Below are positions 3,195 through 63,912 of a stretch of 64,000 nt of DNA, in pieces. Both the position numbers and the translations under genes were made by a program. Positions within the stretch are counted from its first letter, which is position 1. Every line of letters begins with the position of its first letter. This DNA is from Podarcis melisellensis. Lineage: Eukaryota. Under the pieces are notes generated by a model. The model worked only from the letters and a program-made list of their open reading frames with translations. It searched no databases and was not told where the DNA came from. The stretch lies in NCBI GenBank assembly GCA_964234715.1, contig OZ174279.1. One strand, written 5' to 3'.

Positions 3195-3363
3195 CAGTGG
3201 CGTAGCGTGGGGGGTGCAGGGGGGACCGGCCGCACCGGGCGCAACATCTCGGGGTTAGGGTTAGGGGGCGCAAATCCACAGGTTAGGGGGCGCAAATCCA
3301 CGGGTTAGGGGGCGCAAATTACTTGCCTTGCCCCGGGTGCTTACAACCCACGCTACGCCACTG
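3195..3363 (+). mobile_element. Telomeric-motif hAT MITE, copy 1 (3 internal units)
   Basis: 17-bp TIR cagtggcgtagcgtggg / cccacgctacgccactg; perfect 8-bp TSD ccctctgc (3187-3194, 3364-3371); four TTAGGG motifs. Confidence 0.95.
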
Positions 3364-5624
3364 CCCTCTGCTCATAATACCCTCTTATTCCTTAGTTCAT
3401 GCCTCACTTCTGTCCTTGATTAAATACAGTGCAGCAGAATCACAAATATCCCAATGGGACAGGGGTAAACTAAGCAAACTAGTGCAAAACCTTAAGGCAA
3501 GCTAGGAAGTTGGGAGTGCCAATGTGGTGTCCTAACATGTATAGTCACTCTAAAGCAACTGAGCTGCCTGTCTTTGCATTTCCTATCTATTCTCTATCAA
3601 TTCAAGATGCACTGAATATTCCTGGGTAATTACAGTATATCTGATAGATTATCTTTCAAATGCATCAGCGTAAATTAAATTTGTGGAATATGGGCATTCT
3701 GTGTTTGCCAAACTATTCCAGTTTATATGAAAATTACTCTTTTCCCCATTTCCCAGGGGTAACGAACCTGTCAAATGAAGAAATAAAAGACACTGTTAGT
3801 TTGAGAAAGCCAGACCATGCCAAATCACTAATTAAAATTTAGATTGTATGGTAGCAAGCAGGTGCATAATGTCTTTCGGGAACAGGCTAAAATGTCTACT
3901 CTTGACTTTTAATTTTAAAGCAGGATGTAGGCGTCAGTGATTATGAACACAGAATTGAAGGCAAACCCTACGAGACACACAAATATAGCACTGGATTTTA
4001 AAATGGTTCTGTTTATGGATCACTACATGTTTTGTGGAGGGTTTTTTGGTGGAAACACCATGCAAACTAGGTCTCTTAAGGCTGTTCCAAGTTCCAGACA
4101 CAAGTGCTGGATCGCATGAACAATTTGCCACCACCTTGAAAACATTCTGCAAGCAGAAAGCTAGCATTTTCAGGAGAAAGAGTGTAATGCTGTTCTTTCC
4201 CTGACACATTACATTTATAGATGCAGAGAGTTTGGGGAAGAATTCCATCATCTATCCTTCACCTGCAACTACAATCCAAGATGTCTGGTTGAGCAGTCAG
4301 GAGGCTGCCCTGTCAGAAATAAGTACACGGTAAACGTACTTCATCTAATCCTATCCAGCTCATTCTCACATCCAAGGCTGATGACTATACAGTAAAAACC
4401 AATTAAAAGGATTTCGGTTCAGTAAGTCTCTTATGTTTGCTTACAAATCTGTAAAGTGTCATGTACATTGATGGCGATAACGATGATGATGTCAGGATGT
4501 CAAAGTGACATTGCATTAAGCAATCTGAAGATAGAACAACAAATATACCATTGATGGCCAAGCCCTGTTCAGGCATTCACCTCCACAAGTCTTCCAAATA
4601 CATGGAAAGAGGAACGGGGTCAGGTATACTGGTGACATCCCCATCTATGCTGATTCCACCCTCGACCATTGCACATGAGGTATGAAGGTTGAAATTGTCG
4701 TACCTCCAACTGAATGCACTTAGAACTCTTAACAGGAACAGGAATAGGAACCCAGATTGCACTGGTCTCCCCTGGTTGCATGAAGGATTTAAGTGTGTTC
4801 AGCTGAATGCAAGAAGATACCCCTTTCACACTTCCCCTCTCAACATGCAAAGGTCTCAGACTGCAGCTGGAGTTTGCAGGGGTGGGGCTAGAGAGCACAC
4901 CTGCTCCTCTCTCCGTGCATCCTTGGTGAATGCTTGAATGAGGCTCTTATCAACAAGAAATGAGGCCAGATTTAAGCCAGCTGCTGAGGTTAGAAGCAGA
5001 AGGGGCTGGAACAGAAGCACAAGTGTATTTGGTAGCAAACGAAAGCTTTCTTGGTCGCCAATTCATTGGGAGCTAAAAGGATTCTTCCTTACAGTACTTG
5101 AAGATTACTCGTGTAATCCTGTTTGTACAGCTGAGTGAAACTGCAACACATTTCCCTCACATTATGTTTTTGAATCTCCAAATGAAATTTGCTTTGACTA
5201 AGACATATCTTTGGGGCTTGCTTTGCTTAAGAAGAGCAACAAATCTGTTCCTCAGAGCTTAGTTATCCAAAGTCACGGCTATCCATGTTTCTTGTTCGTC
5301 CCTAACAGGTTGGACTAGACCCATGTCAGGGCCCAAATATCTGATGATGCAGTTTGGCTTAGTCCATTTAGGCAAATGAAGCTGCAACTTTATTCTAGGA
5401 CAAGCGGTTGCTGAGAATAATATCGTGCAAATTCTTCTTACATTAACAGTGACAGGCTTGAGGTGACCTCAGGCAAAATCTCCCTCCTTATGCTGACACT
5501 TCAGGGCTTTGTACTTTGGGGCAACAGGGTGGCACCACTCTTCTTCTGCCTCTGCTGACCTTCTCGCTGCTTGTCGTGCTAGGCAGACAGAGAGCTAGCC
5601 TAGACTGGTAAAGGTCGCCATTTA

Positions 5625-5852
5625 CCTTTGAAAACATCCCTGAAATGAGTTCAACACGAGTGGCAATAAGTTCAGCCACTCAGACGCCACCTTTGGGGCC
5701 TCAGAGCCAATGCAGGTATTGGAATGGTGAGACTGAAGCGGGACCTCCCTACTCTGGCATTGTCATTGGCTCTTCAACCCCAAAGGAGGCATTTTGAGTG
5801 GCTGTGATCGCTGCCACTCACGCTGAATTGTCATGGGGGAACTTTCAAAGTA
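5625..5852. repeat. Old degenerate palindrome (~105-bp arms), probable ancient fold-back DNA transposon/MITE
   Basis: Left arm tttgaaa...gagtggca...cagccactca...gcc.cctttgggg...agagccaatg mirrors right arm cattggctct...ccccaaagg.ggc...tgagtggctg...tgccactc...tttcaaa. Confidence 0.8.
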
Positions 5853-7724
5853 GGATAGTACAGTATCTGAACCCTTGGCTACTGGGCACGGTGGCTCTTA
5901 ATGGACTACAGCTTGTTGCCAACAGGTCACTAGCCCCTGCCTGGTGGCCATTTAAGGGCCTCAAACTTAATGCCTGGTAGTCTGATGCTAATGGTACTAC
6001 AATATGTTAAACATGTTTACTAAAGATAGTGGCTTGCATACAGGCTAAACTGGAAACTACTTGGCACAAGCATGAATGACTTTAAGTCACTTTAAATTCA
6101 TCTTCACCAGAGCTGTTTCTATCTAATGAGTTAGCATCTGAGCCTCATGCAAATCCAGTGTGTTCCTCCAGGCCAACTCAAACTGCCACCACATGGTGAA
6201 CTTTTGTATTTAAAAGCAACTTGTGGCATAGAGGCCACAAGGAGCAACTGAAATTGCTTTCCATGTGGTGCCTGTTCCTATGTACAGCCCCTAAGGCAAG
6301 AGTTTATCTGGTATACCAGGACAAAATAAGTACATGTCTGTATCCATTTAAGGCCAGTGCGTTGCATGCTAGTCCCCCTCCCACCCACAAAAAGGAAATT
6401 ATACAAAGGAAAGCCCAACAATTGAATGTGAGGCCCACACTAATAAAACAGGATCCCCCAGGATGGTACATCTGGATGGCTCTAATTTCAAAACTCAGGT
6501 GAGCTGTTTTAGCACCTCTGATCTCTGCAGCCCAGATGTTTGGAGCACTTCCACGTTCTCCTCCCCTTGACGGTCCACACGGCTCACCAGATTATCTCCC
6601 GAGAGGTGTTCGAGCATTGGACACGAGGCATTTGCCAAGGATCTTATCATAATAGTTGGATCTGGACCCATCCCAAATCTAACAACCCTTCTCCCCATCT
6701 CCCATGAGCAGGTCTAGGCAGTGAACCATCATTCTTTTCCCAGAAGAGTGTATGAGGCAACCTGCATGCAGCATTACCCTCTCTCCCGTCCCTGACATTT
6801 GGTGGAAGGAGCAGGTGGCAGCAAGAGGGAGGATGGTGGGGTGGGGGTGAGGTTCAGGTGGGTGATGCAGACAAATTTGAGGAGCTAACAGATCTACTGT
6901 AGATGGGCCAGTGAGATGATGTCACCCTGTCAGCTGCTGCAAAGCATGTGATACTTGCGAGGGTTGATCAAAGGGAACAATAATTTAGATGCCAAGAGGA
7001 AGCAGCATGTAGAACTTCAGATTCAGCAAGGCATGAAATCCTGGTGAAAAGATCCTCCTTTTGATCAGCATTATGGAAAGAATTTGGTTGGGGAAAATCA
7101 GTTATCTAAGCTTGATCCCCTGGCTTCTTCTTTGGGATTTAAACCTCAAGATTACCAAGAACATGACTCTCCCTCTAGGAGTTTGCTCCATAAAATCATT
7201 TTGGCAGTTGTGACACACATAATTCTTCTTCCATATGTTTCATTTTCTTTCGGAGGAGCCCCACCCATGAGAATTTGAGAGATTTAAGGCCAATCTGAAG
7301 CATGAATAAACAAACAAAAGCCAATATATATGACCATAATTTTCTACAAAACCCTTTGAAAGTCCCTACTTAGGGATGCAACATGCTCTTTAAAAGCAGC
7401 AACAACAGCAACTCTTGTCTCTTTAATTTCATACTCTATAATTAAATGTAATGCAAAGAGACTAGCCAGGAGTAGAAAAGGGTGGCAAGTAAAACTGAAG
7501 ACCTCTCTACAGACCCATCTTTCAAAGGCAGAATATTAAACACACTGGCCTGATTTGCACACCACATTAAACCATGGTTAAAAACAAACCATGGTATAAT
7601 GTGAACATATCTGAGCCTCAAGCACACTGCCGAAACATTCTCATTGGCTGACTGTGGAAATGGGTGGGGGGAATACAGTGGAGGGGAGTGGCTCAAACCC
7701 TGAATAGGCAGACTCCATTCCATG

Positions 7725-7962
7725 GGTTGGATCCAAAGTAGCACTGAGTAACTCATTCCATCAGTAAAAGGATTTCCACATAGCATAATGGGAGTTCTCC
7801 CCTCTCCTCCTCTTGTGTGCTCCATAAATCTGTTCTAAGGATTCTCCCCATCTCTGGAAAAGATATGGGGAGTAGGCAGGGCATGTGGGGACAGGAGGGG
7901 GAAAGTCTCATTGTGCAAGCAGAAGTCCTTGCACTGATGGGATACGTTAGTTGGATACTGCA
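7725..7962. mobile_element. Old palindromic MITE (possibly PIF/Harbinger-derived)
   Basis: Imperfect terminal inverted ends ggttggatccaa / ttggatactgc with inner ccatcagtaaaagga / tccttgcactgatgg; similar layout at 34625-34885. Confidence 0.45.
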
Positions 7963-9097
7963 CTGTGACATTTTATTACAGGGGTGCTGTGTCCCCACCC
8001 CCCAGCCTTGTGTATTTCCTTACACCAAGACCCATACAACATGTTAAGTTAATCACATTGCTTGCCCTTGAACACAATATTTTTTCTTTCCTAGAGAATG
8101 CTCACCCCTCCCCAAACTACAGAAGGACCATGGTTTGTGAGGGGCTTCAACCCTTTTCCTGCTGATGCTGTCTTGATCCTGATTGGGAACCCCACACTTG
8201 CTATTAGCTTGGTGGTGGGCGGAGCTCTTGTTTTACCTTCCATTGTCATCTTCCACCACATACATGTGAAATGGCTACAGGGCTTCAGAGTAGGCTCCAG
8301 CAATGGGGCCCATATAGGGGACCCAGGTACGAGCTGAGCAATGACTTAAAACTTGGTTCCGTCTGACCTCAGCAAACTAAGCATAGAGCTTTTGAAATAA
8401 AAGGGAAAGCTGCAAAACAAATATTAAGCAACATACAGATTTCATTATATACATTCTTCAGGTTTGAAACCAAGTAGGTAATTTGTTTTTTGGATACATT
8501 CAAAGAGATAAACAATAATGTTGGTGCTGGGTCATTGTTTTGATAGTTCCAAATACAGCCCTATTGCTGCTCTTTCATTAGTTTATTTTTTTAAAAAGGA
8601 AATCCTTGCATTTTCTGACATAATCACTGGAGTGTTACATAGTTTGCATGTAACAACAAAACAAAACCTTTCCATCCCCTCGCATGCCATTTGGACTGAT
8701 TTAGTGAAACCTCTCGTGAGAAGCAGTCCAATATCAATAGAACTTACAGTATGAGCCATTGCAAACATAAATTATATTGATTTATCTTTTGGAGCCTAAA
8801 ACTCAACCGTAACTAATTACAATATGCTTGCTTTTAAAATGGACTTTTTGAAGCATGTTTTTGACAAATAGATCACACAGGATTATGCGGCTGCAGATTT
8901 CTTTCCCATATTTCAGAAAGAAAATCACATATGTGGCATTGCATGTTAATAAATCAGAGGGGAAAGTCACTCTGCACACGTGCTCAGAAACCTGACTCCC
9001 ATCCCCATTTTCTTAAAGAAAAAAGGAGGCATTTAGACAGAGCATCAAAGAGCTCTGGAAATATGATGTGAAACTCTATAAAATGACTCTAAATGAA

Positions 9098-9293
9098 NNN
9101 NNNNNNNNNNNNNNNNNNNNNNNNNNNNNNNNNNNNNNNNNNNNNNNNNNNNNNNNNNNNNNNNNNNNNNNNNNNNNNNNNNNNNNNNNNNNNNNNNNNN
9201 NNNNNNNNNNNNNNNNNNNNNNNNNNNNNNNNNNNNNNNNNNNNNNNNNNNNNNNNNNNNNNNNNNNNNNNNNNNNNNNNNNNNNNNNNNNNN
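9098..9293. other. Assembly gap (196 N)
   Basis: Run of N. Confidence 1.
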
Positions 9294-9795
9294 ATACGAA
9301 AATAAGTGCTAGATATACACAACTCTGCTGGTGGCACATTCATCATCACTACTTTTATTAGCAAACAGAGTATTACTTAGGTCACTTCTCACTGAGCAAT
9401 TATGACCATTGAGAGAAGAAATGTGAAACTGTTATAGTTCATTAAGGTTTAGAATCAGATGAGCTGAAAAAAATGTGTCTGTTGATACAACTAAAAAAAA
9501 AACCCCAAGTAAGATCAACGATCAAGCTCTTTTATCTCAGTTGACACGAATAGATTGTATTATATGCAATTCTCATGACGGTACTTTTTTGTTTTGCTTT
9601 TAACATTTATATGTGATCAGTTGTCCTTTACTTCACTTGCAAACTCTGTCTATATACTTTGCGAGGAGATTGTAAAAAATCCAGTTAATAATTGCCTTTA
9701 TGTGTATGGTCAAGATGGTCAGTGGAATATGTGGGTAATGATGATTTAGATTGGCCCTTCATACATCCTCGTGGCAGAAGAGATCCTGGCTAGGA

Positions 9796-10830
9796 CTACA
9801 GTGGTTTCGCTCCTTCCTCCTGGGCCGTGTTCAGAAAGTGGTGGGGGGGGATGAGTGTTCAGACCCTTGGGCCCTCACTTGTGGGGTACCTCAGGGTTCC
9901 GTCCTCTCCCCCATGCTTTTTCACATCTATATGAAGCCGCTGGGAGAGATCATCAGGGAGTTTGGACTGGGTGTCCATCAATATGCAGATGATACCCAGC
10001 TCTACCTCTCTTTCAAATCAGAACCAGTGAAGGCTGTGAAGGTCCTGTGTGAGTGCCTGGAGGCGGTTGGAGGATGGATGGTGGCTAATGGATTGAAGCT
10101 GAATTCTGACAAGACAGAAGTACTGTTTTTGGGGGACAGGGGGCGGGCTGGTGTGGAGGACTCCCTGGTCCTGAATAGGGTAACTGTGCCCCTGAAGGAC
10201 CAGGTGCGTAGCCTGGGAGTCATTTTGGACTCACAGCTGTCCATGGAGGCGCAGGTCAATTCTGTATCCAGGGCAGCTGTCTACCAACTCCACCTGGTAC
10301 GCAGGCTGAGACCCTACCTGCCTGCGGACTGTCTCGCCAGAGTGGTGCAGGCTCTAGTTATCTCCCGCTTGGACTACTGCAATGCACTCTACGTGGGGCT
10401 ACCTTTGAAGGTGACTTGGAAACTACAGCTAATCCAGAATGCGGCAGCTAGACTGGTGACTGGGGGCGGCCGCCGAGACCACATAACACCGGTCTTGAAA
10501 GACCTACATTGGCTCCCAGTACGTTTCCGAGCACAATTCAAAGTGTTGGTGTTGACCTTTAAAGCCCTAAACGGCCTCGGCCCAGTATACCTGAAGGAGT
10601 GTCTCCACCCCCATCGTTCTGCCCGGACGCTGAGGTCCAGTGCCGAGGGCCTTCTGGCGGTTCCCTCATTGTGAGAAGCAAAGCTACAGGGAACCAGGCA
10701 GAGGGCCTTTTCGGTAGTGGCGCCCGCCCTGTGGAACGTCCTCCCATCAGATGTCAAAACGATAAACAACTACTTGACATTCAGAAGACATCTTAAGGCA
10801 GCCCTGTTCAGGGAAGTTTTTAATGTATGA
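9796..10830 (+). pseudogene. L2 ORF2 reverse transcriptase remnant with one in-frame premature stop at 10672-10674
   Basis: ORF track 9751-10674; same frame continues EAKLQGTRQRAFSVVAPALWNVLPSDVKTINNYLTFRRHLKAALFREVFNV to TGA at 10828-10830. Confidence 0.9.
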
Positions 10831-10913
10831 TATTTAAGTGTTTTCTGGTTTCTATGGAAGCCGCCCAGAGTGGCTGGGGAAACCCAGCCAGATGGGCGGG
10901 GTACAAATAATAA

Positions 10914-10956
<43 letters not shown>
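10914..10956 (+). repeat. (ATT)n microsatellite, L2 tail
   Basis: About 14 tandem ATT units. Confidence 0.95.
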
Positions 10957-13414
10957 GAGAAGGTATGTTTTATTTTATTGTACAATAGAAAATTGTCACA
11001 TATATGCTTGTCCTGTGTGCATCTGCTGCTGAGAGAGAGAGTGAAAAAAGAAAACAATAAACCCTGTGCATTAAAAAAAGCACATGGTTATATGTGCTGG
11101 GGACCACAGCAATCTAGGAATCCTTTGTTTACTTCTTATATGATATAGTATGCTATATTTCTCTGCTACATATGTGTATTTTGTATTGCAATGACCTTTG
11201 CTAATAAGCAATAAACTTGAAGCGAAAGAACAAAAACAACAACAACAAAATGTGAGCAAATTGTTAAAGAAACTATGATCTTAACTAGACATTATGGAGG
11301 TCTTGTGGCTGTTGCTGATATTCATCTCCCTAATGGCTAGTAAAAGTGGCACATGCGGTGATGTCATAGCATTCAGTGTTTCTCATTCCAGTTTATCACC
11401 TGATGTTTGCAGGGGCAAGGAAATGCTGAAAGTGATGCCCTCACACCATATATTTCTTTACTGGTGGGGGGAGGAATACAGCATTTATTTATTAAATGTA
11501 AGTTTCATCTAATGCAAAATGCCTCTAGGTGACTTACAATTAAAGCAAAAACATACAAATACAAAGGGGAAAAGGCCTCGATTCAGAGCAGCTACGGAGC
11601 CCCATAATTTCTACTTAGGGCCTCAAATTTTCCCCAAACATGTTGCTTTTAAACATGTGTGAGATTTCCCACATGCATGCATATGTACTGGGGAGTTTGT
11701 TAATCTAGTCTAATCAGTTATTGCTAGTGTGAAGGGAGATGTGAGCCTACTGATCTCCACCCCCCAGTAGAGTTATAATCTCTCTTCCAAAGTTCATGAG
11801 ACGTAGCCTCTTTGGTAGATGGTTTGGAGCTGAACCATCCCAGCTCGCTCACAAGCTCAACCCGTCACTTCAGCTCCTGAGGCTCTACAACCCACCCCCA
11901 CCACTAAATCAAAAGTCCCACCTTCACCAAGTGCTAAGAAACGAACAGTGCCCTGCCTCAATCTCATGGAAGTAACACCATTAAGGAATACAAATGGATT
12001 CTCTACTCTGATGTGTTTTCTCTCTGAGTAAAAGGGATCACTCATCCATCGCACAATTGTGTGAGAAACTTATTAGATTCATGCAGGCAAGTAGCAGCAT
12101 GTGATTAGCATTTGAGGACTGATGCAGTTAGGTACCAGGAGAGAATTGGGTATATGTTTTTCTCTTTATTTTTCCTTACCTAATGTGTGTTGTACTGGGA
12201 GAAGGTCTTTTTTCTGTGCCTCTCTGATGGTGCTGATCAATATATTCATGACTGTTACCCACCACAGAAGCTGAGAGAAAGTTTGATCAAAACAAGGATT
12301 CCTGAATGGGATGCATCAGCAGAATGAGTGAGGGCCTAGATGTGTCCATGGCGTAGCCGAGCCGTTTTTCTTGTTGCTGCAGATGCTGCTTGGCAGCCCT
12401 GCAAGGAAACTCTCATCCAGCAGGAAAGAAAACTCTGATGCCTCTCCAATAGTGGCAGGAACAGTCACGGTATAGCAACAACAGCAGCAGCAACAACAGC
12501 ATGCCGCAGCAGGAACTAGTTGAGATTTTTGAGGCTACATAGCCTTCATTCTTTGGAAAACAAGTAAACTACTTAATGTTGTTGAACACAACTGTTCAGA
12601 GCATAGTAGCAACCCGGCTGAATGCACCAGCTATGACCGCCAAGTTTGGTGGATTTTAAAAATGGCAACAGCTTTAAAACATACCCGCAAGCCAAAGGGA
12701 AAAAGTCGCCTGTTCTTTTAGCTTTCTGCCTGCTGTTACTTCACCTGTTCTCTGAACAAGATTTTTTTCCTGGTGCTATCGCCGACCCAGCACAAAAAGT
12801 ATTGACTGCTTATGGGTCACCCTTAGATATCTTAAAGAACATGATGATGTGCGAAAAGGCATTTTGCAAAAAGAGAGGGAAAAGCCTGTAAACTGTTTCA
12901 ACAGCTGTTTTGGCTTGGTATGTACAAGGACTCCTCTGCCAAGAAGCAAGGGCTGCTGAGGCTGAATCCAGCAATGTGTTAATGCCCAAGGGTATTGAAA
13001 GCAGGATGCCAAGGAGTTCACGTCCCACTGGAATGATATTTATGATACAGAAGAGAAGATGGAATAACATCAGAGGACTGGTTGCCCGACTGAAAGAGAT
13101 CAATCCCATCATTTGTCATCGCTCCAAGAACCCTGGCATTTTCAATGCCATTTGCTGCTCTAATCACTCATGTTATTGCTTAGGCTGTAAATACTTTCGG
13201 TGGCAGATCAATGCCCCGAGACACAGAGCAAAGAGGTATGTTAGTAGCAGATCAATGGCCAAGGGGGACATGCATTGATATTTTAGCCCTTGTGTTACAA
13301 ACCCAATGGTCAACAGGTAGCTTTGTGCCTTATTAGGCAAGCGGGGTTAATCACAAATCAACACCCCCACCCCCAAATACTGGTTTTACAACCAGTCCCT
13401 CTTCCAAGGAATGG

Positions 13415-13549
13415 CTCTGTGAGGGGAATAAGGGTCTTCTAACAACTCTCAAGACCCATAGCAAAATGCAGTCCCCATGATTCTTTGGAGGAAGCTACAA
13501 CCTTTAAGTGGTATGATGGCACTTTAAATGTGTGGGGCAGATGTAGGCC
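13415..13549 (-). mobile_element. Fragment of a squamate PIF/Harbinger-like MITE
   Basis: Terminal tttaaatgtgtggggcagatgtaggcc and internal gattctttggaggaagc resemble a common lizard MITE (recall only). Confidence 0.45.
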
Positions 13550-15227
13550 TTAGACGGCAACAGCTTTGTGGTAGGAATCTGTCTTTTTGCATATTGATGA
13601 TGATGATGGTATGAAAAACAGCGTTTGTCTTCTCATACTCCAAGACCCTGTTCTCCGGAGGCCCTTGGCATAACTACTTCTTACGGATGTACCTAAAAGA
13701 CCTACTACTTCCTTCCCAACGAAGAGCTTTTATGCCAGCAAGACTAAATGCTTTCCCCATCTGCAGTGACCACAGGTAGATACTTGCAAATTCCTTATCA
13801 AGCTTTGCCCAGCAGACTCTGCAAACAGATGCTGAGTAAGATATTGGACCTGTGACCCATGGCTCCAAGAGAAAGCCAAATGAGGTTCCTCCTAGTGGAT
13901 AGGGACAAGGATGCTTCCTTTTTAATCTCCATCTTACCTGGAAGGGTTATTAATGAATCATCCCTCTAGGCCCTGGAGTCTAGGGAATAGACAGGGTGAA
14001 GCAGAACTATCGAGTACCTTGTGATCCTCAACAGCCTCACTCCTGTCTCCATTTAAATTTATCCTAGTGTTTTGAAATGTTTTAACTTGTAATGCCAATG
14101 AAAGGATTTGTATTGTATTATTATGATTATGGTGGCAATGAAGAAAAAACAAGATGGATTTGGAAATACTTTAGCCTACTACCAATTCTGGTTTGTGAAG
14201 GGGAGCCCTCTGCTTATTTTACTGCATTGCACACATATTGGTAGCTGGATGCTGAACAAGAAAGATCAGGGTTCTAAACTGAGTGGGGAACCTACACAAG
14301 TAGAGAAATCCCCCACCTCAGAAGTTATCCTTCCAGCTCATGGAGGGAGATGGTGATGGCAGCAAGAATAGCACAGCTCGTACACTCATCCCAGCTCTGC
14401 CTCATTGCCTAAGTTCATGTCTGAACTGGGCTATGTGTGTTTTCAGTTGTAAAGGTATTGCAGACTTTAAACAAATCTTGTGTACAAGCTTTTCATACAT
14501 ATATTCTCCCATGAGCTTTTTTAATTCTCAAAAGGAATTTTATCTACTGGAAACACCTTATTCATTGTCAACACTCCCCTTGTCTCCAATTTTGTGTGAT
14601 TCCTTGGGTAATAATACCTAATATTAATTCTACTGATTCATCTGTAATAATGCAGTTGTGTTTGTACGTTGTTAAGGCTCTTTTCTAAGCCAACAACTGA
14701 TTAGTTGCCTTATTTTCCTAGGTTTAGTGATACTTAGATTAAGCAACTTCTATTGTGGAAATATTATACAAGTGTTCCAGGTTAGATGAAATAACATATT
14801 ACAGAGAAAATGGGTATGCTTCCCAAAATCCATGTATAATCCATGTATTAAGTCCTCCCTTCTCTATTGTTTTGTAAAATTTACCCCATGTCACTGACTG
14901 CTGCTGACATATTTTGGGAAACAAAGAACGTGATGATGTCAGGGCACAGAGCAAGTTTAACTGCATGTTCACTTCAATGGCAGTTGATCACAACCTGCAT
15001 TATTCCTGGCTGTGCTCCACATCAGTGGCAGAAGGTGGGATATTTATAATGTGTTTCCAGGTTTTCGAAGAACAGAGGTTGACTTACAGTAGGTCTGCTG
15101 TTTTCAGAGGTTCAATGTAGGTCGATTCATACAGCTGAAAATGGTGCTATCCTGTTCCGTTCTGTGAAAAGCAATTGGAGATTAATCACATGCTTTAATA
15201 AGTAGACTGAATATGAAGCTGTTATTA

Positions 15228-16415: not shown

Positions 16416-16433
16416 AGTCTCACCATACACTTA

Positions 16434-16785
16434 GGTAAAGGTAAAGGGACCCCTGACCATTAGGTCCGGTCGCGGACAACTCTGGGGTTGCAGGGCTCAT
16501 CTCGTTTATTTGCCAAGGGAGCCGGCGTACAGCTTCTGGGTCATGTCGACAGCATGACTAAGCCACTTCTGGCGAACCAGAGCAGCGCACAGAAACGTCA
16601 TTTACCTTCCTGCCGGAGTGGTACCTACTTATCTACTTGCACTTTGATGTGCTTTCGAACTGCTAGGTTGGCAGGAGCAGGGACCGAGCAACGGGAGCTC
16701 ACCCCATCGCAGGGATTCGGACCGCCGACCTTCTGATTGGTAAGTCCTAGGCTCTATGGTTTAACCCACAGCGCCACCTGCGTCC
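16434..16785 (-). mobile_element. Sauria SINE (Squam1), full length
   Basis: Reverse complement of the 552 element; TSD tcaccatacactta (16420-16433) / tcaccatagactta (16786-16799). Confidence 0.95.
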
Positions 16786-17137
16786 TCACCATAGACTTAC
16801 TGATAAGCATATTCTGTTAGCACCAGCACATGTTGTTGTCGTTTATTAATTTATATATTGGAAGACTTTCACGGGTATTCCAAGACCTGGCAGATGACCC
16901 TTCTTGGGGGGAAAAACTTTCATATACTCAAAGTGTCCAGGGTCCAAAGTCCTTGGACCACTTCTTTGCCTTTCGGTTTAATTTTATTTCATATACAAGC
17001 ACAGGAGCTCAGGAACATCAGGTCCCACAGGTGTTTGAGAAAGTCTGGATTTAGTACAGTTTAAGGCTACCCTTTTCTTCTTTTGTGAAACAATAAATTG
17101 TAAGGTTTTTTTATTTAGACCATGGAACCCTTTGTAA

Positions 17138-17267
17138 CTCGCATTCCCAAAGTCGGCCCTCCAGCTGTTTTGGGACTACAACTCCCATCATCCCTAACTA
17201 ACAGGACCAGTGGTCAGGGATGATGGGAACTGTAGTCCCAAAACAGCTGGAGGGCCAAGGATGCCTG
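17138..17267. mobile_element. Palindromic ~130-bp hAT (Charlie-like) MITE
   Basis: Arms ggccctccagctgttttgggactaca..cccatcatccct / agggatgatggg..tgtagtcccaaaacagctggagggcc; perfect TSD ctttgtaa (17130-17137, 17268-17275). Confidence 0.9.
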
Positions 17268-18741: not shown

Positions 18742-19090
18742 GGGACGTGGGTGGCGCTGTGGGTTAAACCACAGAGCCTAGGATCAGAAGGTCGGCGGTT
18801 CGAATCCCCGCGACGGGGTGAGCTCCTGTTGCTTGGTCCCTGCTCCTGCCAACCTAGCAGTTCAAAAGCACGTCAAAGTGCAAGTAGATAAATAGGTATT
18901 GGTCCGTCGGAAAGGTAAACGGCGTTTCCGTGTGCTGCTCTGGTTCACCAGAAGCGGCTTAGTCATGCTGGCTACATGACCCGGAAGCTGTATGCCGGCT
19001 CCCTTGGCCAATAAAGCGAGATCAACGCCGCAACCCCAGAGTCGTCTGCGACTGGACCTAATGGTCAGGGGTCCCTTTACCTTTACCTTT
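18742..19090 (+). mobile_element. Sauria SINE (Squam1) with small deletion in the head
   Basis: gggacgtgggtggcgctgtgg head, (ACCTTT)n tail, TSD aaccatgactgt / aaccatgagtgt. Confidence 0.95.
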
Positions 19091-21672: not shown

Positions 21673-22024
21673 GGGAAGCGGGTGGCGCTGTGGGTTAAGC
21701 CACAGAGCCTAGGACTTGCCGATCAGAAGGTCGGTGGTTCGAATCCCCGTGACAGGGTGAGCTCCCGTTGCTTGGTCCCTGCTCCTGCCAACCTAGCAGT
21801 TCGAAAGCACGTCAAAGTGCAAGTAGATAAACAGGTACCTCTCCGGCGGGAAGGTAAACGACGTTTCCGTGTGCTGCTCCGGTTTGCCAGAAGCGGCTTA
21901 GTCATGCTGGCCACATCACCCAGAAGCTGTACGCCGGCTCCCTCGGCCAGGAAAGCGAGATGAGCACTGTAACCCCAGAGTCAGCCACGACTGGACCTAA
22001 TGGTCAGGGGTCCCATTACCTTTT
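21673..22024 (+). mobile_element. Sauria SINE (Squam1), full length
   Basis: Same consensus; perfect 14-bp TSD taccccaaacagaa (21657-21670, 22025-22038). Confidence 0.95.
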
Positions 22025-23443
22025 TACCCCAAACAGAACTGCATGTGGACTGTATCACTTCAGATAGCAGTTTTGGTGGGGACTGCATGCTTGAGCACTC
22101 TCCCCAGTAAAGCCCCCAACTTAGTAAGCTGGCATACTAGGAATGGCTAGGCTAGAATCTTCTCTCTAGTACTCAGTTTCCTAGGAAAGGGGAGTATCAG
22201 TTATGCTATTGTTGCACATATATGTCTTCAGCCTAAAGCATTAATATTCTAGAAGCAGTTTTAGGAGGTCGTCAGCTGTTTATGTAGACTTGGCCGCCAG
22301 AGGTGGTGAATCTCCCGTCTCCCATCTCTTTTGGTGTACTGTTATCTGTGATTCTATAGATATCATTCTAATGCCTGAGAGAAAATTAAAGTCAAAAGTG
22401 TGGGTGGATAGGTTGGATTCTTACATTCTAAATATTCCACCTGAAAACTGAAAAACAAAATGAAGAAGATTTTTTTCCTCCTAAAAGCACATGCGTGTGT
22501 ACATTATTGCTTACTGCTGTTAAGTATTGCTATTGTTAAAATGCTCTGCCACTGTTTATTACGCTTGCACCAAAATAAATGCCTGTAACACAGACTTTTT
22601 GCATAAAGAGATCACTTGAACAGGTTGTTTAGTTTTGGTAATATAATTTGACATCTAAACATAAGCTGAGCGGGATCTCACACAAACACTTTGATAATAT
22701 GATTCATTGTCAAATGTTTGCTTTGTCTATCTGGTACTCATTAATTAATTCTTTTTAATATAGCCTGGCTTTACCGATTTGGAAAAAGAGAATTATTCTT
22801 ATTGATGTTGCTAAAATATCCAGGTGGTTTGAATTCTACCGACGAGATGCTCTAATCGAGCACATTTGTGTAGCCCTAATCAAATCTCTGCTAACAGATG
22901 TGAAGCACCCAGTAGTGGAGAAAATGTTTGTGTCTATATGATAATTAAATTACATCAATAAAGAGGAGGAATGAACAATGATGGCTATAGTTTCTTTAAA
23001 CCCAGGTTATCGTTGTTAAGCAGACCCTTCATTAAATCCCCTCTTTTTTAAAAAAAATAGGACAAACTTTTATATTTCAAAAACAAAAATAGATGCCTTG
23101 GTATTGTAGCTTCACTTGTGAGCTTCACCGTAGTAGATCTTTGAGGCTGGTGGCATGTACAAACCTGCCTTCAAATAAATATCACTAATTTGTAATCATT
23201 TTCAAGGAGGGGTGGGGGATGTACTAGATTCGATTACCTCCTTCCCCATTTAAATTGCCCTTCTAATTCAAACAGTTTTGAGCATACAGGTTACAGGTTC
23301 CCATCTTCGGATACCGGCTGTTACATGCAACTAGTTACTAGTGACTGGAGCTGAAGCAGGGCTACAGACTCCCAACATCCATGGTTGATAAAATCTATTC
23401 ATCCCTGTGGCCCTTTTGTAATAGTTCTGGGCTGGATCTAGAC

Positions 23444-23579
23444 CAGACACCGGCAAACTTGACCCTCCAGATGTTCTGAGACTACAATTCCCATCATCCC
23501 TGACCACTGGTCCTGTTAGCTAGGGATGATGGGAGTTGTAGTCTCAAAAGATCTAGAGGGCCAAGCTTGCCTATGCCTG
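23444..23579. mobile_element. Palindromic hAT (Charlie-like) MITE
   Basis: Same family as 17138; TSD atctagac / gcctagac, close to the NTCTAGAN target preference of Charlie-type hATs. Confidence 0.88.
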
Positions 23580-25270
23580 GCCTAGACTAATCAAAAAAGT
23601 GTTTCAGTTTAAAGCATTGTAACTTTAAACAGGGAAAACATGTAGAGAAAAATGGGACTCCACATCACCATCTGGCACAATGTTATATTGCACATACGAC
23701 ACATATAAATAGCTGTTTCTTTACCAGTCTAGCGGAGTCCTTGTTCAGGTGCTTCCACCCCACACAATTAGAATAGCATGAAAGACAGGACAGAGCTTGT
23801 ATTGTTGACCCTACTGCTTCCATTGGGAGCTCCATCATCCTCCATGCATTGGAGGGATGACATCTGCAGCAGGAAACAGCTGTAGTTGTGGAGGCATAAA
23901 CGCAGTGGCTATGCACTAAATCCACTGTCAGAGACAGTGCTGCTATGCTCAGTGCCTTTTTTCTGGTTTCCCCATAGGTATCTAGCTGCCCACTATGAAA
24001 ACAGGATGCTGGACTAGATGGGCCATTTCTTATGTTCTTAGGAGACTCCCTGCGCAATCAGGGCTTAGAACAGCTGCAGAAGTTACCCTCCAATTTGTGG
24101 AGGGGCTGAGAAATGGGAAAGGAATGGAGGAGGTGGCACCAAAATTTTCCCCCTTCTCCCTTTTTTGATTCTAATTGCTTTTTTGCAGGGAGTTAATACA
24201 TGGGCACAGCTAGTGTTGCACCTATAACTCCTATGCTGAAGAATCCTTGGAAGCACAACAGTTAGAAATTCCACAGGGTGTTTTCTTTCTTAGCATGTAT
24301 TTGTGGAGAAAGCTTCACCTGTAGAATTTCTGCCTGCCATGCCACTGTTTGACTTTTATTTTTTCTTCAGTGAGTCTATACCCTAAAGATATCTTCATCA
24401 GGAGCTATGTTGGGTTTTTTAAAAAGGGAAAGATGCCAGTTCTACCTAAATCTCATACAGCTGCATGCCAATTCTACTTAGCCCAGATCTACAGTCTTCC
24501 CATGCAGTGATGTCAGAGAACTACATTTCATGGTCAGCAAAATTGCTGGGGAAACTTACAATTCAGTGGGGCCAAAACAGTTATATTTTTCAATGGTGCT
24601 TATGACCATATATTTAGGGACAGGGTGTTTGCATCGGGCTGAGCTCTCTGGTGCTGCGTGCCAAATTGCAGCTGCAGCCCAGCTCCCAATTTAGCCATAT
24701 TTTTGCTCCAAACACAGGAACAATTCTCTCTGTGTGCACTTTAGTCTATGCTCTGACCTTGCTGGAGGCTAAGTAATGTCACCAGCTGCATGTGTAATGT
24801 GGCCACTGGTGATGAAAAGTGAACTGGCGTAATTTGCCTAGGGATGCAACCCCTTTTAACATATCTAACATTCTTGCAGGTGTGGTGGCTTTTATTTGTG
24901 TGCTTTACTTTGTTTGTTTATTTGTCTGACTAATCAAGCCAAGTCCTCCGTACTCATCTTCCGATTCACCAGTCTCAAAATATTGAGGATTCGGCCTCTA
25001 GATTGTTTCCAGTCGTTAGATGTAACTGATCCCAATGAAGAGAAAGCGGGATAGCTGTGTGCAAAAAAAAAATATAAAAAAATTTAACAGCTGGGTTAGA
25101 GGTTTTTTCCCTCCCTCCAGATGATGGGAATGTAGCTGTATCCACACTTTCCTGAAGGTTTGCGGGTGGAGAAAGGAAAATAAACCCTTGAACCAATCAG
25201 AAATGTCAGAAATGTTCTAATATCTCTTGTTCGAAGAATGAGGACAAAAGTGGGCATGCAAAGGAATGAT

Positions 25271-28279: not shown

Positions 28280-28388
28280 CAGTATGGGGAACCTTTGGCC
28301 TTCCAGATGTTGTTGAACTACAACTCCCATCACTCCTGGCCATTGGCTATGCTTGCTGTGGCTGATGGGAATTGTAGTTCAATAATGT
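28280..28388. mobile_element. Truncated palindromic hAT MITE
   Basis: gaactacaactcccatca ... tgatgggaattgtagttc arms. Confidence 0.7.
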
Positions 28389-40181: not shown

Positions 40182-40355
40182 TCACATGTCAATATAATTT
40201 GGCCAACCTCGAGGCCAACAGTGGAGGCATCCCAGCCTCCTGCACTACCAGCCTCCATTGTTGTCCTCAAAGCTGGCCAAGTTTGTTGACATCTGAAAAT
40301 AACTTGGACAACCTAGAGGACAACGGTGGAGGCTGGTAGGGCAGGAGGCTGGGAT
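40182..40355. repeat. Direct-inverted-direct local triplication forming long hairpins
   Basis: 40229-40283 pairs with 40301-40355 (55 bp); 40182-40228 pairs with 40251-40294; 40199-40228 is a direct repeat of 40304-40333. Confidence 0.85.
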
Positions 40356-40597
40356 ACCAACAGGAAGTTGAGCCAGAAAAGAAGCCAACTAATTTTGCCC
40401 CCCCCCCCGGCCACGTTCCTCCCTGTTGAGTTCTACAAAGGCAACACTGAGGCTAAGGAAGAGGTGGAGGAAGCTTACAGCTAGCAGCACTCCCTAGACT
40501 AGTTGTAAGTAAAGAGTAGGCAGGTTGGGACTGACTGAAGGCAGACTGATCTTGGTGGCGCAATGTCCCACTTACCCCAAAGGGTCAGCCTTCACTG
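40324..40597 (+). mobile_element. hAT-type MITE (cagtggaggctgg TIR family)
   Basis: TIRs cggtggaggctg / cagccttcactg; flanks gaggacaa / ggagacaa; homologous to 2898-3168. Confidence 0.75.
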
Positions 40598-55400: not shown

Positions 55401-56873
55401 AAACAGCTTTTCTTCTTTGATTTATAGGTATTAGTTGTTTTTCCAAGGCCCATTAAAGACTCTTCATCATGTACTTGCAAGGGGCATTAAGCACAAAAAA
55501 GTTGTTCCCAGCTCTATATTATTCAAAGGCAATTTACACTAATTATTGGAATCCATGGTGTTACCCATATTAGCAGAATGAGCCATCCCAGCAGGCTAAG
55601 AGTACTTTTAAAATGCTAATTTATTGGGGAGGTACAAAAAAAATGGGCTTGGAAGAAAGTGTGATTTCCCCCCTCCCCCAGTTAAATCCCAAATGTTTGT
55701 CACACTGAAATAAAACATGCTTGTTTGAAGAGAGAGTTACATTTATTGACGACAGAGTGTGCCACCTATAAAAAGAGTTAGCAGAAATATAGCAATGTGA
55801 CCTTCCTATATTAGAAAAAACACTTGTAAAACATGTTTGCTGTAAAATATATACTCTGGATCACTGACTTATAAGTCTTTAGGCACAAAAACAATAATGG
55901 TTCTCTATCCCTTGATTTGCCAAATAGATATATATCTATAAAAATGTGAAGTGGAAGCTATTCTCCAATAGGGAACAAGGTAGAGAACTGCTGCATGGGT
56001 TGAGATTGCAATTTTCCCTGCATGAGCAAGTAACACTACTTGACACAGGAGTTTTTACATATGTTATGGTATAACTTGTTAATAGAAATCAGTGTGTATC
56101 AACCTTTCCTACACTGGGGGTTATTCTGTCTTTTTTGCTGACTCTCTTCTTTCCAGAAACAACATTGCCCTTAAATGCAAACTGGATTGTTAAAATTGAA
56201 TGTTAAGAATTTAAATTAATAAATAGTTATACATTTTTAGTCATTAAAAAAAAATCTTTAAAAACACAGATGTGAAGTTTTGTAGCTTTGCAAATAACCA
56301 GATTAAAACAAAAACAAAATAGTTTTGTATAGATTTTAAAGGTAGGTTGATAATTAGTACCTGTGATCATCTGAATATGTAGATAAATCTTATTCATTCT
56401 TGACAATCAACTAAGACTTCCGTGGTGGGTGAGTCAGCAACGTTTGAGTCCCATTTTCGAAACATAACTACTGTATATTGTAAGCAATATGAACAAACAA
56501 CAATTTTCTGATGCAAGATAATTCAAAATAAGCAACAATAAAAGTGAAACTCATATTTTACTTGTTTGTTATGGTTAAGATCAGGCCTCTTGCTCTCCTT
56601 ATGCTTGGTAGCATCTGAGAAATCTCAACAGATGGTGTCATTGCAAACAGCAGTCAATGAAGTAGATCGGGAATATTCTCATTGACATGACATCATGCCA
56701 CACACTGAGATATGCTAGACCTGAATTACGTCACACCGTAAGGAACGGGCACAGGTGCTGTAGCAAACTGAATCAAATTTATAAAAGGATACGGGGTAAA
56801 ATGGCACCCATTTAGCTAAGAACTAAAAGCCAGAGCCTATGATCCCAGGCAAGGCATTTTTTTCAGCTGGAAC

Positions 56874-57020
56874 CAGTGGCGTAGCGTGGGGGGTGCAGGG
56901 GGGGCCGGCCGCACCGGGCGCAACATCTGGGGGTTAGGGTTAGGGGGCGCAAATCCACGGGTTAGGGAGTGCAAATTACTTGCCTTGCCCCAGGTGCTGA
57001 CAACCCACGCTACGCCACTG
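56874..57020 (+). mobile_element. Telomeric-motif hAT MITE, copy 3 (2 internal units)
   Basis: Perfect 17-bp TIR; perfect TSD gctggaac (56866-56873, 57021-57028). Confidence 0.95.
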
Positions 57021-57077
57021 GCTGGAACTCACTGGGACCCAGTTCTGGTATCTCTCAGGTGTGTGCCATCGCCATTA

Positions 57078-57309
57078 CAGTCAAACCTCGGTTCCCAAAA
57101 ACCTCTGTTATCGTACATTTCGGCTCCCAAACCCTGAAGTAAATGTTCCAGTTTTTGAACGTTTTTTGGAACCCGAACATCCAACGCAGCTTCCACTTGA
57201 GTGTGAGAAGATCTTGCAACCAACCAGAAACCACCCCTTGGTTGTCAAACGTTTCAGAAGTCAAACGGTCTTCCGGAACGGATTGTGTTTGATAACTGAG
57301 GTTTGACTG
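57078..57309. mobile_element. Tc1/mariner (Tigger-like) MITE nested in a hAT MITE
   Basis: TIR cagtcaaacctcggtt / aactgaggtttgactg; TA duplication at 57076-77 and 57310-11. Confidence 0.92.
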
Positions 57310-59945
57310 TATAAGAGAACAAGGCAGGTGTTCACGGTGAGTTCCGGCACCTCTTTTTCTAGAAAAAAAAGCACTGATTCTAGGAGGAATAGTCATGCAT
57401 GTCCCACAACCAAGTTTAAAACAATAAATCTCTTTTTGGTTTGGTCCAGGGCCTCTTGCATATTTCAGGTCATCTCACTTTCAGTCCTCATTTTCATCAT
57501 GTTCATGGTACTCGTGTGTGTGTGTGTGTGTGTGTAGTTCATCTCTGGTAAATCTGGAAGTTTTCCCCATTTCCCAACATCAGGTGTCTGAGTGTGGCTT
57601 TTGGATTAAAAAAATTATTGCAGTGGCAGTATTTTAGCCGATGAAGCCAGTGGGGCAGCCCAAGACATTTAGCAGCCTATGATGAACACCAGTGATGGAA
57701 AAGCATTCTCCGCAGCTCCATGATTTTCCAAGAACCCTTCCAGACATCCTTTTTATTGTGCAATCATTATGATTTGTGCTATCAGAAACCCCACTTTCAA
57801 TACCGTTTGCAACTGCAAACTTTGGGGCCAGTTACCGTACACTGTTTCATTTCCATTCAGTGCATTTCCCATAACTTCCTGCTGAAATCTAGTAACTTTT
57901 TTTTTATCCTGCAAATGTTCTAGTTTATTTATTTGTCTCACTTTCATTATGCTACAGCCCCTCTGGGCAGCCCTGGGGGAAGCATTGTGGAACAAACTAA
58001 AGTGGAATAAATCTGCCACTAATGCACTATTGTTGTGTCAGGTACATGTTGCAGGATGCACACACACACAAAAACAACAGACTGAAGGGGCCATAAGACC
58101 AAGAAGAACAAATCTATAAAGGATGCAAATTTAACTGGGTGTTAGAGGTTAGAAGTTAGTACAGAAAATGCCCAGTGGTCTATGAAGAGACATCATTTTT
58201 TACCACATGTTTCTGTGCTAAACCTTAGCATTGCAATAGTTTGTAATAACGAGTTCAAATTAAGGCTGCAAACCTATGTATCTGGAAGCCCTATTTTACT
58301 TCTGAGTAAACATGCATAGGCTTGGGCGTCAAGTCCTATAATGCAGACTTATAGCAATTTCTCTTTTTCTGGCATCTGTCTCAGAACCTTCAGTAGAAGA
58401 AGGGTGGGGAGGTATATATATATATATATATACCTATATATATCTATCTCCTTCCTGACCTCTAGGGATGAAGAAACAAATTACCGTACTCATGTATTAT
58501 GCAAATCAGTTTCTGCATCTATTCATCATTTATTTTTATAAAAACATGAAGGGGAAAAAAGAATGAGTGCTGCTGGATTTATCAATGAAAGCTTACGGAC
58601 CACTATGTGCTACAGCAACATCAAGCCAATCTTTGTATTTGAGCAGAGAGATGGGGGGACGGGGACTTCAGAATATTGTTTTGCTGCCATTGGGATCACA
58701 CAGCAGCTGTGCATTATGTATGCGATGCTATTGGCACCAGGCTGCTCTCATTCTAATTAATACAAGTCAGGCTTAATCAGTGGGAGGAGGAAGAAACAGC
58801 AAAACACACACACACACACACACACACAATCCCAACCCACCCAATCCTGAATGAGAAAAATCCAGATCTTCTCACAATTGCCTATTGCAATGCACAGTGC
58901 CAGCTCATCTGCATAATATTAGAGGTACCAAATATGCAAACAGATGTTTCTCTCATTAAATGGTATATGCAAATAATATGGGTAGGAGTGGTAATGTTGT
59001 TTTAGGGTTGAGAGGTCACCGGGGGTAATTAAAGGTTAATCCAGTTTTCAGTTCACAGAATGTAAGACATGAGTGGCTGTGAAGAGAAATTGTCACTTAA
59101 CCTTCAATTCATTACCAACAGGCACATGGATCTTCGACTGAAATAACATAAACATATATGCATTTATCCATTATCCACTGTCTAGGCAGGGTGCATCTCA
59201 CCGGCAATAGCTCAAAATGATTTGTTGTTATGAATCTAGTTAAGTAGGTGCTGGAATGCATTAATTAGGCAAACTGGAATTTGATCAGAAATTCTCAGAC
59301 CCCAATCTAATGTTGTAATCTCATTAAACATATTTCAATAGCTTTGAGATCTTGTCAAACGTTAATAGAAAACCGTCTGAAGTGGTTGCAGAACCATCCC
59401 CTTCCCTAAGATAATTAAAATTCTACCATTTCAGGTGCCGGGCTGTGGCAACCGCCTGAAAGTTGGAGGCAAACGGGAGCCAGCAGGCTGCCAATCAGCA
59501 CTTCTCCTCTGAGTGCCCTGCCAGGCAGATTGAAAGCAGTAAACATTTTAGCACTTAGAACGAGGTTCAGCTCGCCAGATGAAGTTTTTCCCACTTCTTC
59601 CTCCTAGGAGAAAATAAAGTGATAAGTGTTTTGCACGGCAGTCGGCTCCACTTCTGCCTCAGTGCGGGCAGCGAGGGGGAAAAGGTGGGATCAAGAGCAC
59701 TGTAAACACCATCAGATACAGGTGGGAAGAGTTTCTGCAACACACAGGGGGAAAGGTTGATGACTTTCCTGGAAAACATATCTATATGTTCCTGTCAGAC
59801 ACCTCCTTAGCACCGTTTGGTCTGCCTGCGAGAGGTCAGAGTCGTTTTCTTTGAATCTCAGGTAAGAAGCCAAAAACAGATCCATTCGCCAACACACCAT
59901 GCACAACATCTATTTATTCTGTGGCCTATGTGCCAAAATCTAAGC

Positions 59946-61207: not shown

Positions 61208-61210
<3 letters not shown>

Positions 61211-61584: not shown

Positions 61585-61736
61585 AGGTCCACAGTGCAGT
61601 GGAAGGGCATCTCTTTGGCATGCACAAAGGTACCAGGCTCAGTCTCCAGCATCTCCAGGTAGGGCTCAGAGAGACCCGTCTGAAATCCTGAAGAGCTACT
61701 GCAATACTGAACAAAATGAATTAGTTGTCTGACTCG
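61585..61736 (+). mobile_element. Degenerate Squam2-like SINE
   Basis: cagtggaagggcatctctttggcatgca...cagcatctccaggtagggct...tgaaatcctgaagagc...tctgactc. Confidence 0.65.
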
Positions 61737-63269: not shown

Positions 63270-63418
63270 ACACATTTCCATGGTAAAAGCATACGCACGG
63301 CAAACACAAGGTTCCAGGTTGAATCCCTGGCATCTCCAGGCAGGCATTGGAAACATTTGTCTGGAACCTAGGAAGCCACTGCCAGCCACATTACTGAGCT
63401 AGAGAGACCAACGGCTTT
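63270..63418 (+). mobile_element. Degenerate Squam2-like SINE
   Basis: aaggttccaggttgaatccctggcatctccagg...ctgccagcc...actgagctaga. Confidence 0.65.
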
Positions 63419-63423
63419 ACCTG

Positions 63424-63912
63424 GGCTGTATTCAGATGTGGGGTTTATTGTGCTAGTTTTACTGGTGATGATGCTAAAGCTTCTGTCTTGATTCCTAACA
63501 TTCCTTTTACACCTCAGTGCCCTGCAGTGGCGTAGTGTGGGGGGTGCAGGGGGGCCGGCTGCACCGGGTGCAACATCTGGGGGTTAGGGTTAGGGGGCGC
63601 AAATCCACGGGTTAGGGGGCGCAAATCCACGGGTTAGGGGGCGCAAATCCACGGGTTAGGGGGTGCAAATTACTTGCCTTGCCCCGGGTGCTGACAACCC
63701 ATGCTACGCCACTGGTGCCCTGTTGCATTATGGAACGGTGGCTCTTACTGATATACTAGCATGTAGTGCTAAATTTTAAGCAGCAGGAAAGAATTGTATG
63801 CTGTTGTACTACCCTGAATTTTGTCAACACAGAACTCCCGTGATTTCTCAGGTTAAGAGGGCTACAAATTGTTGTTGTTCGAAATGGAACCAACCGCCAT
63901 GTGAATGCAGCT
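63424..63912. mobile_element. Old PIF/Harbinger-like MITE hosting telomeric MITE copy 4
   Basis: TIR ggctgtattcagatg / catgtgaatgcagct (12/15), flanked by ctg on both sides. Confidence 0.5.
63525..63714 (+). mobile_element. Telomeric-motif hAT MITE, copy 4 (4 internal units)
   Basis: TIRs cagtggcgtagtgtggg / cccatgctacgccactg; perfect TSD gtgccctg (63517-63524, 63715-63722); five TTAGGG motifs. Confidence 0.95.

Follow-up and report, generated by a model that had tools for sequence, protein, structure and literature searches.

The elements described here invite comparison with hAT MITEs, whose terminal inverted repeats (TIRs) are short, in the range of 10-25 bp, and with MITEs at large, for which an AT-rich interior is listed as a general tendency (PMC3942097). 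The Tip group of hAT elements, which is defined by transposase phylogeny, makes 8-bp target-site duplications (TSDs) with no described target pattern (PMC3942097). The BED domain binds short subterminal repeats at the ends of hAT elements (PMC10368747; PMC3355664), and tandem repeats borne by MITEs are known, for example Xstir in Xenopus (PMC6947457). Short interstitial telomeric sequences (ITSs), finally, are made of 2-25 tandem TTAGGG units (PMC6410037). In a 64-kb stretch of DNA from Podarcis melisellensis (the window from here on) we have studied a family of short elements that is probably a non-autonomous, hAT-like MITE with a subterminal repeat that happens to spell TTAGGG.

Four copies with common ends

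The window holds four copies, of 169, 147, 147 and 190 bp, with the following features:

3195-3363, + strand: MITE copy 1, 169 bp, 2.8 internal 22-bp units; TIRs 3195-3211 and 3347-3363; TSD 3187-3194 and 3364-3371
3255-3266, + strand: TTAGGG dimer of copy 1, with one TRF-type half-site
3259-3319, + strand: 22-bp tandem array of copy 1
36183-36329, + strand: MITE copy 2, 147 bp, 1.8 units; TIRs 36183-36199 and 36313-36329; TSD 36175-36182 and 36330-36337; dimer 36243-36254
56874-57020, + strand: MITE copy 3, 147 bp, 1.8 units; TIRs 56874-56890 and 57004-57020; TSD 56866-56873 and 57021-57028; dimer 56934-56945
63525-63714, + strand: MITE copy 4, 190 bp, 3.8 units; TIRs 63525-63541 and 63698-63714; TSD 63517-63524 and 63715-63722; dimer 63584-63595
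63587-63670, + strand: 22-bp tandem array of copy 4; GGGCGCAA motif at 63566, 63595, 63617, 63639 and 63661, two of them CpG-decayed

The 17-bp TIR matches at all eight element ends with 0-2 mismatches, against 0.02 matches expected by chance in the window, and the 8-bp TSDs are perfect in four of four copies, each copy having its own sequence. These elements, with their coordinates, lengths, TIRs and perfect TSDs, had been proposed in an earlier sequence-only reading; we re-located them, and a blind scan of the window (12-bp TIR plus 8-bp TSD) agrees, returning the same four and no others. A ninth TIR match at 10201 (3 mismatches) lies inside a reverse transcriptase reading frame and is a chance match. 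The three N gaps of the window are each at least 5.4 kb from every copy, so that no element spans a gap and the uncertainty is limited to the distances between copies. All four copies are on the + strand (P = 1/8), and copy 3 sits nested within an older TIR element.

The copies had also been called near-identical: they can indeed be aligned over 147 columns common to all, but the pairwise difference is 4-6%. That their CpGs are largely intact is borne out by observed/expected ratios of 0.60-0.79, against 0.26 for the window. At 147-190 bp, non-coding and bounded by TIRs and TSDs, the copies have the build of MITEs, but with 64-66% GC they lack the AT-rich interior that is typical, though not universal, of such elements. 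A stable fold that extends past the TIR stem is not shared by all copies (z of -4.5 for copy 3 and -0.35 for copy 4), and an Rfam search of the window found no family.

Mobility and superfamily of the elements

The site of copy 3 (56874) is empty, with a single TSD kept, in two public sequencing runs. In the first, X2, contig 16 joins position 56865 to 57021, the 155 absent bases being the element plus one TSD; in the second, X14, contig 9 is empty in the same way. Such a site implies that the family inserts by cut-and-paste and has done so recently, and with the TIRs and copy-specific TSDs it upholds the earlier view of a young, recently spread MITE with hAT-type ends. The family is present in four of the four organisms compared through contigs of their sequencing runs; in X1 as in X2, flanks differ among more than 100 contigs, at the left end and at the right. 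Four copies in 64 kb and thousands of contigs with many unlike flanks are an indication of abundance rather than a copy count, and agree with the high copy number expected of MITEs. The family is thus an abundant, recently mobile, non-autonomous cut-and-paste MITE with a hAT-type TIR and TSD.

Its superfamily is a more delicate matter. Neither a transposase nor a long element combining these TIRs with one was found in the fetched loci; the window likewise held no transposase, and a Pfam scan of 20 of its reading frames returned one reverse transcriptase only, with no transposase and no host exon that could anchor orthologous loci. Because no transposase was found, it is the TIR and the TSD that point to hAT. 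hAT TIRs start YARNG, and two hAT groups have target preferences, nnnTAnnn for Buster and nTnnnnAn for Ac. The Buster pattern fits none of the 4 lizard TSDs and none of 21 metagenome TSDs, and the Ac pattern none of the 4 and one of the 21. The Tip group is presumed, a lead taken from the CAG(T/G)G(G/C)CG-type ends.

The metagenome TSDs come from 106 distinct non-lizard MITEs in metagenome contigs that have the same terminal 11-mer, those 11 bases having been fixed by the search pattern itself. Of the 106, 44 are flanked by an 8-bp TSD that is perfect or has a single mismatch. Elements with 5-bp TSDs (8 exact) end in this 11-mer as well, so that the TIR core does not single out one superfamily. 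Outside this set, three viral matches to the 17-bp TIR were dismissed as chance, with no second TIR and no MITE structure; the paired-TIR pattern was absent from viral contigs, and its three matches in bacterial genomes had no TSD.

P, Zisupton and Merlin elements also make 8-bp TSDs, and the MITE could belong to one of these superfamilies rather than to hAT, an assignment that would leave the incidental reading of the motif unchanged. The missing transposase, the misfit of the TSDs to the Buster and Ac patterns and the 5-bp TSDs beside the terminal core would all be in keeping with it. We nevertheless consider it unlikely, since hAT elements typically pair an 8-bp TSD with a short TIR that begins CAGTG. 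The 17-bp length also lies within the hAT range, and Tip elements have 8-bp TSDs free of any described target pattern (PMC3942097). The lizard MITE is therefore best called hAT-like, as far as its ends can tell.

The TTAGGG motif and its origin

What set these copies apart in the sequence-only reading was an interior opening on telomeric sequence, with 3-5 TTAGGG per copy. The number stands (4, 3, 3 and 5 in copies 1 to 4), but the interior does not start as telomeric: the motif begins at about base 61 of the element, and only two TTAGGG are ever adjacent, in one dimer per copy. Each of the remaining hexamers belongs to a different unit of a 22-bp tandem repeat that is based on the GGGCGCAA motif; 1.8-3.8 units are seen, and copy lengths differ by whole 22-bp units. 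When the repeat is phased on GGGCGCAA, the dimer falls inside a degenerate first unit and the hexamer is in register with the repeat. GGGCGCAA occurs 3-5 times per copy, decayed ones counted, with an inverted TTGCCCC near the right end, as in the short repeated subterminal motifs of hAT elements, and this subterminal repeat is probably a transposase-binding site.

The relatives are informative here. The eight closest (L011, L019, L046, L052, L064, L067, L115 and L120) have their ends and a GGGCG(G)CAAA motif in common with the lizard MITE, and all eight are without TTAGGG; the DNA around them resembles non-coding eukaryote sequence. Seven of the eight score z of 4.1-6.4 against shuffles, and the left 47 bases of L019 match the lizard element at 87% (E 5e-10). 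Several read TTTGGGGG at the position aligned to the lizard TTAGGG, and several read TTTGGGGGCGGCAAAATT where the lizard MITE reads TTAGGGGGCGCAAATT. They are distant relatives, and G-rich MITE ends may resemble one another partly through convergence. No metagenome contig contained an exact match to the 22-bp unit.

The transposase would be encoded at another place in the genome; it would bind the 17-bp TIRs and the short subterminal motifs, that is, the GGGCGCAA copies and the related inverted TTGCCCC, cut the element out and insert it, duplicating 8 bp of the target. Each hexamer would owe its GGG to the beginning of the G-run leading into GGGCGCAA, slippage of the 22-bp unit would have multiplied the hexamer, and the dimer would have arisen in the degenerate first unit of a founder copy, through one further duplication of 6 bp or the loss of a short stretch between two units. 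A hexamer that is in register with the element's repeat and absent from relatives favours slippage over a one-step telomeric insertion. TTAGGG is thus most likely a by-product of the G-rich internal repeat, so that the family should probably be seen as an ordinary transposon rather than as a carrier of telomeric DNA.

Two telomeric readings had been put forward, a vehicle for mini interstitial telomeres and the capture of a telomerase-healed break, and neither fares well. In the latter, the founder would have acquired telomeric DNA at such a break, as short ITSs do, and the MITE would have spread it. This is very unlikely: the in-register hexamer overlaps a G-run that relatives have without TTAGGG, one 6-bp slippage suffices for the dimer, and a lizard variant without the dimer, ancestral or derived, exists in organism G. 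The same observations speak against the vehicle, as does the number of TRF half-sites (YTAGGGTTR): there is one per copy whatever the number of units, and the remainder of the window holds four by background, as many as the four copies together.

At tens of thousands of sites the motif might still, whatever its origin, recruit shelterin, other telomere-repeat binders or proteins that bind G-quadruplexes, affecting chromatin or the spread of the element. Each copy does offer a half-site and one TTAGGGTTAG 10-mer and matches a relaxed G4 pattern, and in a human cell line TRF2 is reported to occupy thousands of G4-rich sites outside telomeres. TTAGGG positions show no changes in the four copies, against 1.3 expected, which is not significant (P about 0.26). 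TRF1/2 bind as dimers, however, and the single half-site does not multiply with the units. In human, TRF1/2 occupy only about 30 of hundreds of short ITSs, in a length-dependent manner (PMC6410037). The strict G4 pattern is absent from the copies, relatives without TTAGGG are as G-skewed (G4Hunter 1.5-2.0, against 1.9-2.1 for the lizard copies), and contig depth over the dimer bin falls relative to neighbouring bins in runs X6 and X14, a weak hint that the dimer is the most variable part. We accordingly hold recruitment to be very improbable. More doubtful still is its boldest form, in which tens of thousands of polymorphic sites in wall-lizard-like genomes would have received from a DNA transposon a TTAGGG dimer with a 22-bp array prone to form G-quadruplexes, and would be bound by telomere-repeat proteins, so that the MITE would rewire extra-telomeric shelterin binding or gain a transposition advantage.

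A large, young MITE family polymorphic for presence and absence can serve these lizards as a marker. In such genomes, transposon copies may also be caught when telomere motifs are counted or telomere probes are used at low stringency. Should telomere proteins bind the MITE, filled and empty alleles would be a natural test of a minimal interstitial TTAGGG site in a vertebrate.

Comparison with known systems

A literature search (the TIR string; hAT-Tip100 in squamates or Podarcis; MITE with TTAGGG) yielded no description of the lizard MITE; most subscription papers, Dfam and Repbase were outside its scope, so novelty is not proven. Among known elements, the nearest are hAT MITEs, probably of the Tip (Tip100) group, such as the BuT2 MITEs (PMC3942097), with which it has in common a short TIR, a copy-specific 8-bp TSD, the lack of coding sequence, conserved ends and recent spread. 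It differs from them in its GC-rich interior and far higher copy number, and no partner transposase was found in the window or fetched loci. The eight closest metagenome MITEs are alike in the TIR core, the G-rich left end, the GGGCG(G)CAAA motifs and a length of about 130-165 bp, and L115 and L120 finish their right end with AACCCACGCTACGCCACTG, as the lizard element does; TTAGGG and a perfect 22-bp array are what they lack. Xstir and Xmix of Xenopus and the GTCY-carrying MITEs of insects (PMC6947457) likewise bear an internal tandem unit whose number varies between insertions, but in the lizard the unit is of 22 bp, reaches few copies and contains TTAGGG. With exactly two tandem TTAGGG, the lizard dimer stands at the bottom of the range of short ITSs (PMC6410037). 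It departs from them in that the other hexamers are 22 bp apart and not in tandem, and in that the motif lies in a transposon's own repeat and is spread by transposition, not by locus-by-locus insertion at breaks.

The MITE family and its interior

The four elements that the sequence-only reading had placed at 3195-3363, 36183-36329, 56874-57020 (copy 3) and 63525-63714 are indeed found there, with lengths of 169, 147, 147 and 190 bp, and its account of their ends holds as well: the terminal inverted repeats (TIRs) span 17 bp with 0-2 mismatches, and each copy has a perfect 8-bp target-site duplication (TSD), differing between all four. A blind scan of the whole window for 12-bp TIRs with 8-bp TSDs returned no element beyond these. 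hAT elements have TIRs of 10-25 bp and TSDs of 8 bp (PMC3942097), and the lizard MITE falls within both values. The family behaves as a hAT MITE, and membership of the superfamily is likely, short of proven because no transposase was found in the window or the retrieved loci. The TSDs match neither the Buster nor the Ac target pattern, and the lead that remains is the Tip group. For that group no target pattern is described (PMC3942097).

Over the 147 shared columns the copies differ pairwise by 4.1-6.1%; CpG transitions make up 8 of the 14 columns variable among the four, and changes outside CpGs amount to about 1.3-1.5% per copy. CpGs are largely intact, as had been noticed, with an observed/expected ratio of 0.60-0.79 in the copies versus 0.26 in the window. 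N gaps lie at least 5.4 kb from every copy and leave the elements unaffected.

The interior is phased on GGGCGCAA: a first, degenerate 29-base unit is followed by one to three 22-base units and then by a final GGGCGCAA motif toward the right end. The 29-base unit contains the single run of two tandem TTAGGG hexamers found in each copy (the dimer, 56934-56945 in copy 3), and the remaining hexamers come one per 22-bp tandem repeat unit. The two 147-bp copies hold 1.8 such units each, the 169-bp copy 2.8 and the 190-bp copy 3.8, which accounts for their differences in length. Of 57 TTAGGG in the window, 15 lie within the elements, and the 42 elsewhere compare with 40 expected by chance.

Copy 3 sits inside an older TIR element (56850-57376, ends CAAGGC.. 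/ ..AGCACTG), whose 8-bp flanks agree at 6/8 positions and whose right flank has a central, Buster-like TA. This element also encloses a TA-flanked MITE (57078-57310), and both are high-copy in reads.

Other repeats in the window
553-896, 16433-16786 (minus strand), 18743-19088 and 21674-22023: SINE-like repeat of about 350 bp, four copies, 81-89% alike, possibly indicating a wall lizard as host
9745-10671 (plus strand): open frame of 309 codons, partial reverse transcriptase (RVT_1, E 9e-18)
17141-17266, 23437-23586, 28290-28385 and 40226-40358: short palindromic MITE-like hairpins
29584-29931 (plus strand): fragment without a Pfam match, resembling an RTE/BovB 3' end

Empty sites and variants in public reads

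Parts of 56500-57300 occur in twenty public runs that come from seven organisms, and contigs of four of them (X1, X2, X6 and X14) were aligned on 56450-57450. The sequence-only reading had proposed a check for empty sites, and an X2 contig supplies one: it joins 56865 directly to 57021, without 155 bases that equal the element plus one TSD, and represents a clean allele from before the insertion. The same empty junction recurs in X14, with a small indel next to it, and flank contigs that cease matching at 56873 (X1) and 56862 (X6), with 71 and 75 letters beyond, suggest empty sites there too. A further run, X15, contains 87% of the words and is possibly the source sample; its organism label is identical to that of X2, so the copy 3 site may be polymorphic within one species.

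The family is present in all four runs, with 7,000-14,000 contigs aligned, neighbouring repeats included and contig depth not being equal to copy number; in X1 and X2, over 100 contigs extend from each element end into flanks unlike one another. Extrapolating from the 64-kb window with its four copies (Poisson range 1.1-10.2; selection biases the density upward), a 1.4-Gb genome would contain tens of thousands, as an order of magnitude and not a count.

A dimer-less variant appears in six X14 contigs, where the first unit has a single TTAGGG leading directly into CAAATCCAC. X6 and X14 have less depth in the dimer bin relative to its neighbours than X1 and X2 do, which is weak evidence. Back-joints from 56990 to 56937 (X2) or 56959 (X2, X6), with summed depth up to about 240, represent a subfamily whose internal duplication is longer and takes in the right subterminal part. 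In depth, one-base losses in the left G-runs (56888, 56898) come to 5-7% for X1 and X2 and 1-2% for X6 and X14, an unevenness hinting at lineage-specific subfamily bursts. At 56937 in X6, twelve contigs link the 22-bp unit to letters resembling the reversed head of the window SINE, possibly a SINE-MITE chimera.

Relatives with the same TIR core

A paired-TIR pattern search of metagenome contigs with the terminal 11-mer of the lizard MITE gave at least 120 stretches, or 106 distinct elements among the matches listed. Among these 106, an exact 8-bp TSD flanks 22, one with at most one mismatch flanks 44, and an exact 5-bp TSD flanks eight (L022, L025, L038, L048, L061, L077, L100 and L113), so one TIR core accompanies two TSD lengths. 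Any TTAGGG occurs in only 5 of 108 distinct elements among the matches listed, bacterial matches counted in.

Eight relatives (L011, L019, L046, L052, L064, L067, L115 and L120) are lizard-like beyond the searched 11 bases, seven of them with z 4.1-6.4 versus shuffles; L019 matches the left 47 lizard bases at 87% (E 5e-10). Their left arm is G-rich like that of the lizard MITE, the GGGCG(G)CAAA motif recurs in both, the right end is shared, and their G4Hunter scores are similar to those of the lizard copies. TTAGGG is absent from all eight, TTTGGGGG or similar being aligned opposite the last lizard hexamer. As far as these alignments tell, the group has conserved GGGCG(G)CAAA together with its G-run rather than TTAGGG. 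Telomerase capture, which would make the hexamers, including the tandem pair, a telomeric addition, seems to us very improbable.

The element at L122:3549-3671, 123 bp long and near-palindromic with 54-bp arms, has the same TIR core and one TTAGGG per arm, which shows that G-rich MITE ends acquire the word independently.

Origin of the telomere word

Most hATs possess short subterminal repeats, which the BED domains of their transposases bind (PMC10368747, PMC3355664), and tandem repeats carried on MITEs are already documented (PMC6947457). The GGG of each hexamer is the beginning of the G-run entering the GGGCGCAA motif, itself a putative transposase-binding repeat. One base change ahead of this G-run would have created TTAGGG, slippage of the 22-bp unit would have multiplied it, and a 6-bp slippage would have produced the dimer in a founder that was then amplified. 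We think it quite probable that these steps explain both TTAGGG and dimer; the parts observed are the 8-bp duplication at insertion, the change in unit number and the relatives without TTAGGG.

It is highly unlikely, in our view, that the word serves to recruit telomere proteins. TTAGGG positions changed in none of the four window copies, versus 1.3 changes expected, a non-significant difference (P about 0.26). YTAGGGTTR half-sites number one per copy whatever the unit number, and the rest of the window has four more. Only a minority of human short interstitial telomeric sequences (ITSs) is bound by TRF1 and TRF2, according to length and conservation (PMC6410037), so a site of two units is an unfavourable target. 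The strict G-quadruplex pattern is absent from all four copies and the relaxed one is present in all; for three of the four, the G4Hunter maximum falls within the left arm.

In the literature covered we found no published description of the family; this analysis adds empty alleles at 56874, a variant lacking the dimer, and relatives free of TTAGGG. By length alone the dimer falls within the bare definition of a short ITS, but the sequences compared give no clear pointer to the mode of insertion by which short ITSs are defined.
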